A stretch of DNA of 64,000 bases from positions 368,517,252-368,581,251 of the forward strand of contig NC_085841.1 of NCBI RefSeq assembly GCF_035594765.1, given 5' to 3'. This document shows, piece after piece, positions 24,982 through 36,144 of the stretch. Numbering within the stretch: position 1 is the stretch's first letter; every line of letters starts with the position of its first letter. Made by a program: the position numbers and the translations under genes. A model generated the notes under the pieces. That model made no database searches, had not been told where the DNA came from, and worked only from the letters and a program-made list of their open reading frames with translations. This stretch comes from Anolis carolinensis. Taxonomy: Eukaryota.

Positions 24982-26786
24982 TTATTGTGACACAGCAAAC
25001 AAGATAGATATGCTGGATTTCGTTTCACAAAATCACAAGTCGAACACTTCCCAAGTGTCTAGGACTGTGTGATGTATTTTCGGATGATGCGAGCAGATCC
25101 CAGTAGGGTGGCCTTTTGCAGCTGGCAGATCGTAATTTTGTCAATGTCTATTGTTTCCAAATGCCGGCTGAGATCTTTTGGCACGGCACCCAATGTGCCG
25201 ATCACCACCAGGACCACCTGTACTGGTTTCTGCCAGAGTCTTTGAAGTTCAATCTTGAGGTCCTGAGAGCGGCTGAGTTTTTCCTGTTGTTTTTCGTCAA
25301 TGCGACTGTCACCTGGGATGGCGACATCAATTATCCAAACCTTTTTCTTTTCCACAACTGTGATGTCTGGTGTGTTGTGTTCCAGAACTTTGTCAGTCTG
25401 GATTTGGAAGTCCCACAGTATCTTTGCGTGCTCATTTTCCAATACTTTTGCATGTTTGTGATCCCACCAGTTCTTTGCTGCTGGGAGGTGGTACTTGAGG
25501 CATAAGTTCCAATGAATCATTTGGGCCACATAGTTGTGCCTCTGTTTGTAGTCTGTCTGTGCGATTTTCTTACAGCAGCTGAGGATATGATCAATGGTTT
25601 CATCAGCTTCCTTGCACAGTCTGCATTTTAGGTCAACAGTTGATTTTTCGATCTTGGCCTTAATTGCATTTGTTCTGATGGCTTGCTCCTGGGCTGCAAG
25701 GATCAGGCCTTCTGTCTCCTTCTTCAGTGTCCCATTTGTGAGCCATAGCCAGGTCTTCTCTGTATCAGCTTTTCCTTCAATTTTGTCAAGGAACTTTCCA
25801 TGCAATGTTTTGTAGTGCGGTTTTCTTGTACTGGTTTTTTGTCTGCTGTGTTTTGAGGAGTTTCTGTTTTTTGACTTCAATCAAAGCAGGTTCTTCACTT
25901 TACTTTACATATTCTGCCAGGGCATGTTCTTCTTCTTTGACTGCTTGTTTTACTTGCAAGAGTCCTCTGCCCCCTGATCTTCTAGGCAGATATAGCCGGT
26001 CAACATCTCTGCGAGGGTGCAGTGAATGATGAATGGTCATGAGTTTTCTTGTATTTCTGTCCAAATTGTCCAGTTCCGCCTGTGTCCAATTTATAATGCC
26101 AGCAGTATATCTTATGACAGGTATGGCCCAGGTGTTTATGGCCTTGATGGTGTTGCCTCCATTGAGCTTGCTTTTGAGAATTTTTCTGACCCTTTGTGTG
26201 TTTTCTTTGCTAACCACAGTTTTCACATGTTCATGCTTGATGTTGTCCAGCTGTAATATGCCCAGATATTTATAGGCCTCTGGCTGGTGACACTTTATTG
26301 TTTGGTCATTGGGCATATTTATGCCCTCACTTTCAATTATTTTTCCCTTCTTCAATGCCACTGTCGAACATTTGTCCAAACCAAACTCCATGTTGATATC
26401 AGTGCTAAAATTTCGGACAGTGTTGGTCAGAGACTGGATTTCAGTTTGCGTTTTCCCATATAGCTTCAGGTCATCCATGTACATCAAATGTGAAATTTTG
26501 TGAGAATTCTTAGATGTGTGGTAGCCGAGATTTGTTTTTTGTAAGATTGTTGACAGAGGGATCATGGCAATAATGAAAAGCAGAGGGGACAATGAATCTC
26601 CCTGGAAAATTCCTCTTCTGATGTTGACAAGTCCATAGCTTTCATTTCCAACAAACAGTTCAGTTTTCCAGTGCTCCATCATGTTTTCAATGAAGGTGCC
26701 AACGTTTTTACTAATCCGATGGCGTCCAGACACTTGATGATCCAGCTGTGTGGGAGTGAGTCAAAGGCCTTTTTGTAGTCAATCCA

Positions 26787-29314: not shown

Positions 29315-30579
29315 GTCTACAGCCTATAGTTATTCCCAATGAGAGCAGTCACTGCTTCCATTGCATTTACCTATTTGTTGATCCTAAAGGATTCGCCAAG
29401 AGCGCTGAAGCCACCGGTTCCTGCATCAGGTGTGCCATCAGGACCCAGTCAATCAAACTCTGTTATTAAACCATTTATTTCTGCAGAGTGGTGGGATGGA
29501 ATGGAGCATTGGGTACTCAGTGACATTCCCCACCAATTGCACTGGGAATCATGGCTGGGAGCAGTGATTTTTCCAGCGTCCTCTCTGGCCTCGTTGGGCC
29601 CGCGATGCAGTCTGGAGGCACGAGGTGCAAAGTCCCTGCTGGCAGAGCAGAATCTGGCCCTACCGCTCTTCAGAGAGTTGGAATCGGATGGACTTTTTTG
29701 GTGTACGAACGAGAGAGGCCCCAGTTTTGTGGGGCAGAGGTGGAGGGCAAGCGCTCTTCAGGCTACATCTGGTTTCTGTGTGGTGGAAACAGAAACAGAA
29801 AGAACTATAAGGAGATCCAGCCAGACCCCTGCCTGCCCACCCATCCTCCTGCCCACCCTTCAAGCCCGGAAGCCGAAGACCTGGCCTTGGGGCAAAGAAG
29901 AACACCCCCCCCCCCCAACCAGGCACCCTGGCCACCCTGGGCATGGGGAACTCTGCACAAGCAGCAGGTTGAAAGAACAATGGAAGCCAGGAGGGGAGTC
30001 ACTTTTGGCCTCCCCACTGCAACACATGTGTGCGTGCACACAGACAATAGAGAGTCACTAGAGACGCATCAGAATAGACCTCTGTGCCCGACAGACTTTC
30101 TTGCCACAAGGCACCAGCAAAGACATTTGGCTAATCTATAGACCCCTTCACTTGGAAGAGACCCCAACCCTCTTCTGCCAGGTGGGAAGGCATAACCAAA
30201 GCCCTCTTGATAGATGGCCACCTGGTCTCTCTTTAAAGAGCTCCAGGTGCCAGCATATTTCCAGGCAGCAGTGGATTCAAATGGATCTCACAATCAAGCA
30301 TTTCTTCCTGATGGTTAGGTGGAACTGCATTTCTTAGAATCTGAATCCATTGCCCTGTGTCCCAGTCAGCCTCTCTGTGCCAAATTGTCAAGGAAGGCCG
30401 CTTGCAACAGAGGGGCAATTGCCTCCAACCTCCCCAGCCCTCCCCAAAGGCCCTTTCTTATGCTCCTGAGCATGTGTGGAGTCCATGGATGGATGGGGGG
30501 CTGACACCAGAAGGGGGGAGGAGGGGCCCACCCTTTTCATAGGGACAGCACCAAGAAGAGAACTGCAGGCAACCGCCAC

Positions 30580-30960
30580 TGCCTCCTTGATCTAAGGAAA
30601 GGAAAGCTAGACACCAATGGATAAGGTAAGAACTTATTTGGACTGAGGCGCAAAAGAGAAACAAAGAGCTTTGATAACCATGACAGAAGTGGTTAAGAAG
30701 GTCAAAACAGGAAAAACACCAGGACTAGATGGCTTAACTGCTACGTATCACAAAACTCTAGAAGACAAATTGCTTATGCCATTTCCACAGAACACAAATT
30801 CAATTTTGAATTCTGGAAGTTCACCAGACAGCTGGAGTGATGCTAATATAACTTAATACCAAAAGAAGATTGAGATTTGCGGGATCCCAAGGAGGACAGA
30901 CCTATCTCTGTGTTGAACAAGCATTATAAAATATCTGCATCGATGTTAATGGACAAAACT
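30580..30960 (+). mobile_element. L1/Tx1-clade RT N-terminal relic
   Basis: KTGKTPGLDGLTATYHK...PDSWSDANIT-IPK...RPISVLNKHYKI. Confidence 0.8.
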
Positions 30961-33900
30961 AAGCCATAACACCTGGAATCCCATAGCATGGAGCCACGGC
31001 TGTTAAAAGTGATGTCAAATGGCATTCATTCTGCAGTGTAGATGCACCCCATGATAACGAAAGCGAAAGCAAGGGGGAGGGAGTTGAGAAGGGAGAGGGA
31101 GGGAGGGAGGGAGGGGCTCTTCAGCCCTGGGTTCCCTCCCTGAAGAACCATAGAATAATGGAGTTGGAAGAGACCACATGGGACATTTAGTCCAACCCCC
31201 TTCTGCTATGCCTGGTGAAAGTGGCCTCGCAGTGTTGTAATCCTATGCCGTGAACACACTCCAAGCAGAGAGACCCCTTTGTGCTCCTGGGGGGCTTTGC
31301 TATTTGGTTTTAAAGCTCTCTCTCCCTGCTTGTTTGTGCGTGTGTGTGTTTGTGCATAAGTGTGCTGTGTGTTGAGATCAATTCCCTGCTGCCTCCTGCT
31401 CCTGGCTTGGCTTTGGTTTCCTTCTGTGGCTGTTTCAGATTTTATGCTCTTTTACAGCATCATATGCAAGTTTTATGACTTAATCTTTATCTCGGCAGCA
31501 GCCACTTGCAGAGCTCCAGCTCCTGGGCATTGCGGAAACGGAGGCATCTGATGCATGGAGTCACCCCTCGCCTGCAAAAACGGGGGCAGAAAGATGCATT
31601 TGGAGAGAGGAACAGGGGCCCACCAGCTGGAAGAGACTCAACCTTATTAAACACAACACCCCCTCAATGCCACAGGTGCAGCTCTCCCCAAAGCCATCTA
31701 GTCCAGCCCCCAACACAAAGGAATGCCCAAATGAAGCCCAGTCACATGGGAGGCCCCCAAGCCCCACCTTTCCCCTTGGCACTCTATCGCTCCCCCCCCC
31801 CCCCTTATATCACATAAAATACATTGGACACCCCTCTCTCAAGCACAGGATAGTGAGACTGCATTAACTGAGCCAGGCGACCATTGTGCTGGATAGCAAC
31901 AGAACATACAACCCAAGAAGAATCAAGTACATGTGCCACTCAGGCGCATCTGCTGTGCAGGCGCACCTTACGGGCCTGCGCACTGCCTGCATGCACAGTG
32001 ACACCGACCTTCAGTTGAACGCAGGCCTTCCTCCCCACACAAAACATCTCCAGCTGCTTCTGCAGGAAGACCTCTGCAGATGCCTGGCACCTACAGGATT
32101 CCAGTCAAGTGAACACATTTGGTTGAAAGACTGCTGTTCCTGTCACTCCAGTGTGACTCCAGTGAAGGAGGCCACAGTTTAGGAAAGCCAAGACTGGCCA
32201 GGACTGGCCACTTCCCTCTGGTCTCTGGCGGTTGAAGGGAGTGATGGATGCACATCCTCATCAGCCCCGCACAGCCCACACTTCAGTGGAGACACCAGGC
32301 AGAAAGAAGCCCAGATCAGTACGAAACCCCAAGGGCACAAGATGCAAGAAGGAAAGGTGAAACTCAAAGCCTCTCCAGCCACACTGCAAAGCAACCTTAG
32401 TCTGGGACCTGTAATTGGACCCCATCCCTGCAGGACCGAGAGACACACAAGGCTTGCAAGCACAACAAGCAGCTTCCGAAGGGAGTCGAAACCGCAGCAT
32501 GCCTCCTCTGCCGTCACGAGGTCCAAAAGCATCAGGAAGGAGAAGGCCTTTGCCAGCCCTCTCTTCGCCTGCAAGGGCCCCACAAAAGCAGCAAACACAG
32601 ACTCTCTTGGGGTGGGGAGAAGAGAGCTTTAGAAGCCCCCACCCCGGTCTTGACATAAGAAGAGCCCAATCTTCTGCCACCATACCTTTGCCTCGCTGGG
32701 AACACCATCCCATCCACACAGGAGCCCTTCTCTGGGAGGAGGCCTCAGAGTGGCCTTTTGTCTGAGTTTCACAGCAACATAACCCAAAAGGACAGCAACA
32801 CAACCCCCAGAAGAGGATTGTGGGGGGGGGGTGCATAAAGGCCATAGAAAAGAGAGGGGGAACAGCCCCTGCATAGAAGACGCCTGAGCCAGGGCTGGGC
32901 TTGAGCCTCCAGAGCCAGGCAAGTGAGAAAGGAAATGCCCCATCCATCTCCCCACGGACTGGGCTCCCTTCCTCAGCTCCTTTTGCCAGAAGGAGTCAAG
33001 AGACAAGCAGGTTGCCCACATTTAGTAACCACTCTGCTGGATTTCCCATTTCTTTAGTATCTGAACTGGATTTTGCAAATGGGAGCTGGCTACAGGGAGT
33101 ACACGATTCTCTTCTTGCAATAGCTGCAATGGCTAATGGTCCACCGTTCAAGGTGCTGGTTTGACCTGCAAAGCCCTATAAAAACGTGAGTCCAGGCCAA
33201 TTGAAGTGACGCATCTCCTTTCATGAGACGCTTTGGCCTCTGAGATCTTTTGGGGCAGCCTTTCTCTCCATCGACCACCTTCCAAGGCTCATTTGATGGC
33301 AACAAGGGGGGGCAGCGCGGCCTTGTTGACTCTGGAGTTCCCTCCCCAGAGAGGCCCGCTTGGCCCCATCATTACTCTCCCTTCAATAGCCTGGCTTTTA
33401 AAATCTGGGCTGGGTTTTAACCTGGAGCAGAAGTGTTTTCAAGGTCTTTCAAGGTAGATGGCCTTTAAATGAACTTTAACTTTTTACATATGTCATGTTG
33501 TCACTTTAGATATTAATAGTTTTTGAATAACTTTTATATTCATACCTTTGTTAATGGTTTTATAGATTTCTCATCTGTACTGTTTTTCAAATATGTTGCC
33601 TTCCACTTTAGGGGAAAATTGGGACAGAGTTAAACACATCAGGAGACCTCCTTGCGCCGAGGCTCAGACATGTCCCTCCTCCGTCCTGGATGCGCCTCAG
33701 CCTCCTCTTGACAGAAGAAGCACCAACACAAACAAAACAACAGCGGCCCAGCTGTGTATTTGGAGAACACAAACAACCCCTCAAACTCAACCAGAGAAAC
33801 AGCCAGTAAAAAGGAACTGCTTTGGGCCAATTCCAGAAAAGGAGAGGAGCAACCTGGATGAGAAATGCACACGGCACCAAGGGTGAACCTCACCGGCATT

Positions 33901-34516
33901 CCAGGATAGCTCCACTTCCATTCAGAGCTGTCTCCTTCCCAGCAGCTGAAGGCACAAGGAAGCCCCCCAGAAATGGGCTGGCCTTAAGAGACTGACATTT
34001 CCTAGGCCACCACGATCAAGGAGGAATCGTAGGGTCATATACAGTTGGTCCAGCCTCCTCTGCAAACCAGTTGACACAGTCCAAGCACTCTTAACAGACT
34101 CTGCTTGAAAATCTTTTAAACTTAGAAACAGGCTTCTCCTCAATGTGGCATCCCTTAAACTATTTCTCATGCCCTTCCTTCAGCCTTCTCTTCTCTAAGC
34201 TAAACATCCCCAGTTTCCTATTCTGTTCCTCAGAGGGATTCATGGCTTCCAAACCTTTGATCTTTTGGATGGCCTTCCACAGACAGCTTTCCAAAGCCCC
34301 TTCCATGGACAGCAATGTGCAAGAACAATACAGCACCAAAAAGGGGTGTCAGATCCAGCTGTGCCACAAACCGCCCCAGAACCCTCTGTCTCCCTCTGCC
34401 CCATTGCCCCCAATGCAGACAGGGCAAGCAGCCATAGAGGGGCCCCTGCTAAGGCTTATTCAAAGAGGGATCAACCATTCCCCCGTCACACCAACTGCAT
34501 GTATGGATGGAATAAT

Positions 34517-34522
34517 TTTATT
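34517..34522 (-). terminator. Likely LRFN5 polyadenylation signal AATAAA (3' UTR ~35099-34500)
   Basis: TGTAAAATAAA on the minus strand ~580 nt after the stop. An upstream TGTA lies at ~34555 and a GT-rich element (GTTGGTGTG) follows. The intervening UTR lacks recognisable TEs. Confidence 0.65.
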
Positions 34523-35099
34523 TTACACAACATAACAACACAGAGTTGTTGGTTTTGTACAGCATCTGCCTGGAAAACGAAGGCAACACCATTGTCAATG
34601 GGAAAGGAAAAGAAAAAGACACTCAACCGCTTTTGAAAAATACTCTTTTCTTCCCCCTTTTTTTTGCGTACTGACAGATCCGTTGTTGTTGTTGTTGTTG
34701 TTTGGCGCGGGGGGAGCCGATCCCTTGCCCAGGCCCCGTTTGTTCCCAATCTGCCAGCGAGGGACCAGAATGCCAATCCAAGGGGAGGGGAAGGCACTGG
34801 TGCTGTTTTCATGCTTTTTCCCTTTTTAGATAAGGATCTGCCTTCATTGGGAAGATTAAACCAAACGAAAACCCAAACGGAAGAATGTGGAGGTGCTCAG
34901 TGGCTTGTGCACAACTTTGCACGGACACGAGGGGAGGGCGGGAAGCCCCCCATGGACAGCTCAATCGGGCGGGAGTCCTCGGGCAATGTTTGGAAAGGGA
35001 AGGCGGTGGCGGTGGGGGGCCGCCTCCGTACTCCCCCCTGCCCGTCCCCCCTTTTGAATCAATTAGAAAAACCCATCACCACACACCGCAGCAGACCGG

Positions 35100-36144
35100 T
35101 CACACAGTGCTTTCCAATATCCACTCAGAACTGGAAAAAGTCGCTTTGCCGCTATCTGACTCTGAGCCTCCCGTTGCCGGCAGGAGCAGCATCCCGTTCA
35201 TGGAGAGGCTCCGCTTGGACCAGAATCCGCCCGGCTGCTGCGCGGAGGGGGAGGCGCTCACGCGGCAGTAGTACTCCACCGCCTCCCCTCCGTTCAAAGA
35301 GTACCGGCGCTTGGCCCGGGAGGGGTCGGCCGGCAAGGTGAGGAACTTACTTGGCTTGGCTTGTGCTCTTCTGTACATGGAGGAAGGCGTCACCCGGGCG
35401 CAGTCCAAACCCCGGGCCCCGGCCAGCTGCAGTGCTGTGGAGTTGTTCCGGTTAGTGTTCTGGGACTCCAGGCCGGTGGAGGAGGCGGCGGAGGCGGAAG
35501 CGGCACCGGCACCCTCGCACGACTGCACCAGCAGCTCGCTACCGGGCTTTGGCATGGACTTGCGCTTCAGCTTCTGAGAGCCGGAAGGGCCCGCAGTCCA
35601 CGTGTGAGGCAACGTCGCAGAGGTAGCGGCAGCACCAGCTCCTGAGGAGTCCTGGCCGGAAGAGTCCGAGGACGAGGGCACAACCACCGTGCTGTCGCCT
35701 CCAACTTTGCAGCACTTCAGTTCCTCCTCATGGCCCACGGCAGCCTGCTTGGACCCAGACGGCCCCTGCCCCTGGGCCCCGTTGGTCTGCGAGTACACAT
35801 TGCTGACCTTGGTGGCCTTGTGGTGCCCGCCTCCGCTGCCCCCACCGGGACCGCCACCGTTGTTGCACACCTTGTACCGGATCATGAGGATGATGATGAA
35901 GACCAAGACGGAGGCCACGATGATGCCCCCGATGATGATGATCATGGTGCCCCCCAGGAACTGCGACTGCATAAAGTGGCACCGGACATAGTCCTGCTCC
36001 GTGGCAAACTGGATGCAGCCCACCACCCGCGTGGCCGTCAGGGAGGTGATGCCGTCGTCGTAGATGGCCAGCACGCACAGGTCGTAGGTGGTCCCCGCAG
36101 CCAGGTTGTTCACCAGGAAGGTCTTGCTGGTGGGAGGGATCATC
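35100..36144 (-). CDS. LRFN5: LRFN5/SALM5 second coding exon (rest of FNIII, TM helix, cytoplasmic tail ending EWILESTV)
   Basis: Acceptor ctctcccccccacag|G at 36144 completes the Arg codon, in frame with [17 protein letters not shown]...[30 protein letters not shown]. Stop TGA at 35102-35100. The spliced CDS is 2451 nt = 816 aa. Confidence 0.95.
35345..35354 (-). other. LRFN5: Internal consensus 5' splice donor CCAA|GTAAGT inside the last coding exon (after ...AQAKP)
   Basis: The minus strand reads GCC AAG CCA A|GT AAG T, with the exon boundary after 35351. This matches the point where canonical mammalian SALM5 diverges (...AHIKP-NALL...). Use in this species is not shown. Confidence 0.6.

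Follow-up and report, generated by a model that had tools for sequence, protein, structure and literature searches.

A probable composite terminal exon in anole LRFN5 that would keep or remove a putative PDZ ligand on SALM5

The 3' end of LRFN5 in Anolis carolinensis is very probably a composite terminal exon, in which an internal donor would compete with a proximal poly(A) site. When the donor at 35351 is ignored, cleavage would follow the proximal AATAAA and an 816-aa SALM5 ending in a class I PDZ ligand would be produced; when it is used, 5,575 nt would be removed, a distal last exon would be joined, and the product would be a 771-aa SALM5 without the PDZ ligand. Because the choice between splicing and proximal polyadenylation removes or keeps the terminal ESTV, it would decide the PDZ-domain scaffolding of SALM5, for which the binding is predicted. 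The use of this switch may be regulated, and the toggle is seen here as two co-existing RNAs. Positions are those of the window, a 64,000-nt stretch of the anole genome (contig NC_085841.1, 368,517,252 to 368,581,251).

In the SALM family, SALM1-3 have a C-terminal PDZ motif, and SALM4 and SALM5 are described as being without it (PMC5895706). This division into PDZ-binding (SALM1-3) and non-binding (SALM4, SALM5) members underlies models of how SALM5 reaches synapses. The present analysis suggests that for SALM5 the division holds only in placentals, and the textbook view of a SALM5 without PDZ motif would describe placental mammals, not vertebrates in general. The annotation itself is not new, the sequences and both isoforms being already present in RefSeq and UniProt for this genome and many others. 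LRFN5 would be a fourth SALM with the family PDZ tail plus an on/off splice option, of which current reviews state the opposite for the family; no paper on an ESTV-ended LRFN5 or on its splice option was found in open-access full text.

Gene identity and inventory of the 3' end

The gene was identified as LRFN5/SALM5 on the minus strand, a paralogue being excluded by identity and by exact match to database proteins. It has the LRFN5 exon structure, in which two large coding exons meet in phase 2 within FN3 (AG^GT ... cag^G, the caret marking the splice boundary). The first coding exon ends with AG^GTGGGG in phase 2, matches the Pfam families LRR_8 (1.6e-40) and I-set (3.8e-17), and in the protein search reaches 91-94% identity with LRFN5-named proteins of squamates, birds, turtles, crocodilians and mammals. 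The second begins at 36144, behind the acceptor ccacag^G at 36146-36145, and contains the ORF 36143..35100 (minus strand) of 347 aa, which comprises the FN3 end, the transmembrane helix and a long cytoplasmic region. No Pfam family was found in the second-exon product, FN3 being split by the intron and the remainder disordered; its single TM stretch is invariant in the 9 species of the second-exon alignment. The gene has the LRR and Ig ectodomain, the single TM and a best similarity to LRFN5, not LRFN1-4, of an LRFN5 orthologue.

The window exons were searched piece by piece, and full-length comparisons were made via database proteins instead of joined exon models. By exact comparison, XP_062824816 (isoform X1, 816 aa) corresponds to exon 1, an R and the entire 347-aa ORF, and XP_062824818 (isoform X2, 771 aa) to exon 1, the R, the first 264 residues, a K and a different 37-residue end. 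The exact match of the window pieces to both proteins identifies the gene as LRFN5/SALM5 and shows that RefSeq already has both forms as automated models. This agrees with the suspicion of the preliminary description that the tail might already appear in automated sauropsid annotations: isoforms X1 and X2 are in RefSeq for this genome, and X1/X2 pairs are found in many sauropsids. The features, all on the minus strand, are as follows, with the evidence in parentheses.

40908..42313, minus: first coding exon, with signal peptide, LRRs, Ig and FN3 start (ORF, Pfam, protein search)
35351..36144, minus: second coding exon, part common to both isoforms, with FN3 end, TM helix and cytoplasmic region to ...RRAQAKP (ORF, acceptor, alignment with 8 orthologues)
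35345..35353, minus: internal 5' splice site CAA^GTAAGT, last exon base 35351, phase 1 (sequence, RNA-type contig junction, 9-amniote conservation)
35100..35351, minus: read-through tail of 83 codons (S734 to V816 of the 816-aa product) and stop TGA at 35102-35100 (ORF, contigs of 4 studies, dN/dS, conservation)
35103..35114, minus: E-S-T-V codons, class I PDZ-ligand motif (x-S/T-x-V at the free C-terminus), putative in binding (sequence)
34472..35099, minus: proximal 3' UTR of the ESTV isoform, with AATAAA at 34522-34517 (sequence, contig ends)
29776..35350, minus: intron of 5,575 nt removed in the spliced isoform, including the tail ORF and the proximal 3' UTR (contig junction)
29660..29775, minus: alternative last exon, coding part, with stop TAG at 29662-29660 (tblastn, sequence, junction, XP_062824818)
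29474..29479, minus: candidate distal poly(A) signal AATAAA of the spliced isoform (sequence only)

An ORF running 83 codons past CCAA^GTAAGT to ESTV, followed by an AATAAA, had been reported for this locus and is borne out by the window sequence. The reading frame across the donor is gcc aag cca a^gt aag ttc, with the GT at 35350-35349; the site is perfect at intron positions +1 to +6 (GTAAGT), and the exon base at -1 is an A where the consensus is G. The protein of the read-through form ends in ESTV directly before the TGA, which is the x-S/T-x-V/L/I terminus of a class I PDZ motif. A GTAAGT is expected by chance about 0.25 times per 1-kb exon, so that the hexamer is not rare and is weak evidence when taken alone; a chance match was set aside given the junction contigs, the conservation of A^GT AAG and the conserved in-phase acceptor and exon. 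The donor was accepted as real because it has RNA junctions, because A^GT AAG is present in 9 amniotes and because a conserved in-phase exon lies 5.6 kb downstream.

The alternative last exon was located at about 29764-29666 by tblastn with the snake and lizard isoform X2 tails (6e-10). It starts at 29775 behind the acceptor ...tttccaccacacag^, and the pyrimidine tract together with the acceptor reads ...tgtttctgtttccaccacacag^. The phase-1 base of the donor and the first 'aa' of this exon form a K codon, after which the exon encodes TRCSLKSACPPPLPHKTGASLVRTPKKSIRFQLSEER. The spliced product has 38 other residues in place of the tail, ending ...KSIRFQLSEER, and with its 771 aa it lacks a PDZ ligand.

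Turtle, bird, crocodilian and mammal share 74-86% identity over the first 600 nt of the proximal 3' UTR. In the anole, this UTR also has a (CAA)n run at about 34675-34710, beside which all four RNA-type runs described below carry 3 extra letters (TCA on the plus strand) behind window position 34726, owing to a polymorphism or a minor assembly difference. Other features seem particular to the anole or lie outside the gene. In the cytoplasmic region, GC-rich insertions after ...KVCNN (window 35820-35850, minus strand) and an Ala/Ser-rich run (window 35480-35530, minus strand) are absent from the 8 other amniotes aligned, and the GC content of the anole tail is 63%, compared with 39-56% in the other amniotes aligned. 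Retrotransposon-derived fragments of reverse-transcriptase ORFs are located at 25059-26733 (minus strand), downstream of the gene, and at 50848-51504 (minus strand), upstream of it, with Pfam RVT_1 matches of 1e-13 and 4e-15 plus a weak zf-RVT match below the cut-off.

Read-through and spliced forms in RNA-type contigs

For the RNA check, the contigs, not the raw reads, of four runs from four different studies were aligned to 29630-35619. The runs had been labelled 'RNA?' by guess and their RNA nature is deduced, which appears safe because of the contrast in depth between exon and intron, the canonical GT..AG joint and the fact that contigs terminate at the poly(A) site. Contigs representing the read-through form cross 35351 unbroken in all four studies, and in 3/4 runs a single contig extends from past the proximal AATAAA into the upstream exon, starting at 34481, 34508 or, in a longer form, 34231. 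In run X1 the assembly graph splits exactly at 35351, the contigs covering 34472-35380 and 35351-35619, which is the pattern expected from two continuations. The contig ends at 34472-34508 are situated 10-45 nt past the AATAAA at 34522-34517. Contig depth is 20-186 in the exon and UTR, compared with 0-5.6 over 29830-34229, bar a repeat at about 31.0-31.2 kb. This repeat (31030-31229), inside the removable intron, has a contig depth of up to 875 and many loose ends in 3/4 runs, and is a short interspersed, transcribed repeat family outside the gene model.

The spliced form was found in two of the four studies. A contig of run X1 joins 29775 to 35351 and skips 5575 nt, whose ends are CT..AC, that is, GT..AG on the minus strand; in run X7, a contig ending at 29775 continues as the 12-letter TTGGCTTGGCTT, which is the plus-strand sequence from 35351. 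Contigs with the junction 35351^29775 were absent from the other two studies. The ratio of read-through to spliced contig depth is about 4:1 (46 vs 12.1 in run X1 and 19.7 vs 4.3 in run X7), indicative only, as depth is a poor measure of ratio, and on this indication the ESTV form was the more abundant RNA in the four samples seen. At the level of contigs, a read-through polyadenylated RNA (four studies) and a spliced RNA (two studies) are both present, as in a composite terminal exon. The comparison of read-through with junction at 35351, which the preliminary description had proposed, thus returned both forms, and its supposition that the internal donor could be used was confirmed by the junction in contigs of two studies, alongside the read-through in four.

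Conservation of the tail, the donor and the alternative exon

About 70 of the LRFN5 clusters that the searches returned, from chimaera to marsupials, end with ...SEWI(L/M)ESTV, and the LRFN5 tail hardly varies between sharks and marsupials. They include chimaera, sharks, rays, bichir, sturgeon, gar, bowfin, many teleosts, caecilian and frogs, as well as turtles, alligator/crocodilians, birds, squamates and marsupials. Further upstream in the tail, the WSKRS(L/M)SMNGML block is conserved as strongly as the terminus. This distribution shows the tail as ancestral to jawed-vertebrate LRFN5. An ancestral PDZ tail had been proposed earlier for this locus, and the proposal stands, with ...SSEWI(L/M)ESTV found in LRFN5 from chimaera to marsupials and the core also found in cyclostome LRFN-family proteins and fish LRFN2; the implication that the tail is a lizard peculiarity does not stand, the ESTV tail being general from sharks to marsupials with placentals as the odd ones out.

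The codon analysis used genomic DNA of eight orthologues and the anole (without Pogona), with the second exon aligned codon by codon and the method of Nei-Gojobori. The dN/dS values for the three parts of the exon were as follows.

83-codon tail, Anolis vs six sauropsids: dN/dS 0.05-0.18
cytoplasmic region just upstream of the tail, Anolis vs other sauropsids: dN/dS 0.20-0.43
FN3-TM part, Anolis vs other sauropsids: dN/dS 0.01-0.04

The test of dN/dS on the tail, advised in the preliminary description, gave values below those of the upstream cytoplasmic region, and in squamate pairs synonymous change in the tail exceeds non-synonymous change with a Fisher p of 2e-9 to 2e-6. By this codon pattern, the tail is protein-coding sequence under purifying selection.

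The synonymous sites of the tail (window 35103-35351 and orthologues) also change far less than synonymous sites elsewhere in the exon when turtle, crocodilian, bird and mammal are compared in pairs: the proportion that differ is 0.07-0.25 in the tail vs 0.34-0.68 outside it (Fisher p 1e-3 to 7e-8). The tails of turtle and ostrich are 94% identical in nucleotides. The pattern was not significant in the opossum-warthog pair and does not hold among squamates. It suggests an added constraint at the RNA level, for example splice or poly(A) control.

The junction at the donor reads (C/T)(C/A)A A^GT AAG TT in 9/9 amniotes, with the Ser codon always AGT, of six possible, and the Lys codon always AAG. 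Annotated isoforms that diverge exactly after ...KP are found in geckos, skinks, cordylids, anguids, snakes, emu, tortoise and mammals, the KP^ splice point being the same in mammals, birds, turtles and squamates. The alternative last exon is present 5.4-17.4 kb beyond the ESTV stop in Podarcis (lacertid), snake, gecko, turtle, alligator and ostrich, and its end is conserved as ...TR(Q/P)KSIRFQL(T/A)(E/G)(D/E); the 22-nt acceptor tract hardly differs between anole, lacertid and snake. These alignments show that donor and alternative exon are conserved across amniotes, which would give amniotes a conserved splice option removing the ESTV tail. In the leopard gecko Eublepharis, for which one isoform is annotated, the alternative last exon (...CPSLPLENTATHACTWPESIRFRL...) follows the ESTV stop at a distance of 5.6 kb (L003 20858-20975).

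Other tail-less ends occur in the annotations. A second splice point lies 16 codons further, after ...SRAKR(R)^ (window about 35304-35310), and is used in annotated tail-less isoforms of newt, carp, rattlesnake (isoform X3) and one further species, and Characiform fishes have another tail-less end, ...DIDVL. It seems that the splicing-out of the ESTV tail recurs across vertebrates.

Other SALM tails, alternative readings and the mammalian end

The anole tail resembles those of SALM1-3 (LRFN2, LRFN1 and LRFN4) in the last four residues, ESTV, in the pre-terminal SSEW(I/V)(L/M)ESTV shape, in the upstream WxKRSLS(M/V)NGML block and in the overall architecture of LRR, Ig, FN3, TM and tail. It differs in being located on the SALM5 paralogue and in being optional, as the internal donor can remove it; the residues before ESTV are I/L in the anole and V/M in LRFN2. 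The tail-only word search returned LRFN5 orthologues only, and the LRFN2 and cyclostome tails came from an exhaustive HMMER search with the whole second exon. By BLASTP, the last 97 aa of the anole protein and the last 110 aa of fish LRFN2 are 34% identical (E=1e-12) with both conserved blocks aligned: the upstream block WTKRSLSVNGMLL of fish LRFN2 pairs with the anole tail block, and SADWVMESTV pairs with the anole EWILESTV end. Mouse Lrfn2 ends with GTFGSSEWVMESTV, according to an immunogen peptide (PMC5472790). A likeness to the LRFN2 tail had been put forward earlier; its terminal part GTFGSSEWVMESTV matches this mouse peptide, and its upstream part WTKRSLSVNGMLL was checked against fish LRFN2, not mouse. 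Similarly, a lamprey 'LRFN4-like' protein ends with SSEWVMESTV and hagfish LRFN-family proteins with SSSDWILESTV. Because the tail core is common to LRFN5, LRFN2 and the LRFN-family proteins of lamprey and hagfish, the tail is older than the LRFN paralogues.

The tails of LRFN1/2/4 bind PSD-95 via the C-terminal motif (PMC5895706). SNX27 is bound only by the LRFN1/2/4 tails, and only with their last three residues, and is not bound by the human LRFN5 tail (PMC8296521). Because its motif is identical to that of these paralogues, the anole SALM5 tail is predicted to bind PDZ domains, and PSD-95-type docking is probable by this analogy.

Splice control of PDZ ligands is known from the C2/C2' cassettes of GluN1 (NMDA receptor) and from the 'a' and 'b' C-terminal forms of PMCA. 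As in these systems, one gene would yield both an isoform that has a C-terminal class I PDZ ligand and one that lacks it, through a choice in the 3' coding region; however, anole LRFN5 would use a composite terminal exon, with an internal donor set against a proximal poly(A) site, and not a cassette exon.

The ESTV terminus would be nothing unusual if the gene were a SALM1/LRFN2-type paralogue, normally ESTV-ended, mislabelled as SALM5, a reading to which the tail core common to LRFN2 and anole SALM5 lends some colour; however, dozens of species have a protein named LRFN5 to which the extracellular exon is 91-94% identical, Anolis LRFN5 XP_062824816 contains the coding pieces unchanged, the tail search at E<=1e-3 gave LRFN5 orthologues only, identity to LRFN2 over the second exon is merely 41%, and the KP^ junction with its preceding sequence matches mammalian SALM5. 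The LRFN2-for-LRFN5 mix-up was rejected by the ectodomain identity, the tail search, the LRFN2 identity and the XP_062824816 match, and its probability is negligible. Somewhat less improbable, yet still very unlikely, is that the read-through RNA is a retained intron or unprocessed pre-mRNA and the ESTV ORF an untranslated relic, the real lizard protein being the spliced PDZ-less form as in mammals. The tail stretch is indeed intron in the spliced isoform, and placental mammals show that the tail ORF can decay, but the contigs cover the tail and UTR as deeply as the upstream exon and far more deeply than the remaining intron, and they stop just past the AATAAA. The low dN/dS of the tail (0.05-0.18), together with a block invariant over >400 My, is also unlike an untranslated relic, and the annotations of many fishes, amphibians and sharks contain the ESTV form alone.

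A third possibility accepts both isoforms and concerns the function of the tail, which would mainly serve something other than PSD-95 docking, such as SNX27/retromer recycling, other PDZ proteins or a role of the conserved upstream block. It may be raised because in LRFN1/2/4 this motif binds both PSD-95 and SNX27 (PMC8296521), because the WSKRS(L/M)SMNGML block is as conserved as the terminus and because the synonymous constraint on the tail in turtle, archosaur and mammal pairs hints at an additional role at the RNA level. It is considered improbable as the main role, and would refine the composite-exon reading rather than replace it.

Here the composite terminal exon with a predicted PDZ ligand is the preferred reading. 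Under it, chicken, zebrafish, frog and anole would lend themselves to asking what SALM5 gains from PDZ docking, and placentals would be an evolutionary 'natural knockout' of the SALM5 ESTV motif. A broader joint reading, which is offered tentatively as a possibility, is that the PDZ-less SALM5 is a derived placental state; the ancestral and prevailing vertebrate SALM5 would carry a PSD-95-type ligand, switched by a deeply conserved competition between splicing and polyadenylation, and the synonymous constraint on the tail could be the RNA code of this competition.

In mammals, the seven marsupial models end with SEWILESTV. Among placentals, the few models whose read-through frame is still open end with SKWILESTV, SECILESTV, SECILESTM or SEWILKSAV, and a lemming model and one primate-like fragment no longer reach ESTV; human/primate-like proteins were compared at their C-termini only. 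The dN/dS of the tail is 0.5-0.7 on pairs with warthog vs 0.34 for turtle-opossum. In these few species, the placental tail appears to be drifting or broken, which fits a relaxed coding constraint after the spliced form took over.

The canonical mammalian SALM5/LRFN5 (719 aa, ...HIKP^NALLTNVDQIVQETQRLELI) is the product of the same gene with the same donor position and phase after ...KP, and is the counterpart of anole isoform X2 (771 aa); the anole samples differ in having the unspliced ESTV form as the main RNA. The preliminary description had noted that mammalian SALM5 changes sequence right after ...KP, and the same donor point was indeed found in mammalian LRFN5. The mammalian exon NALLTNVDQIVQETQ, when read on into the intron as VRFLL, aligns with the sauropsid ENVATNVCTRQKSIRFQL exon; these short alignments suggest that the canonical mammalian end derives from an alternative exon of the sauropsid type to which one more donor was added.
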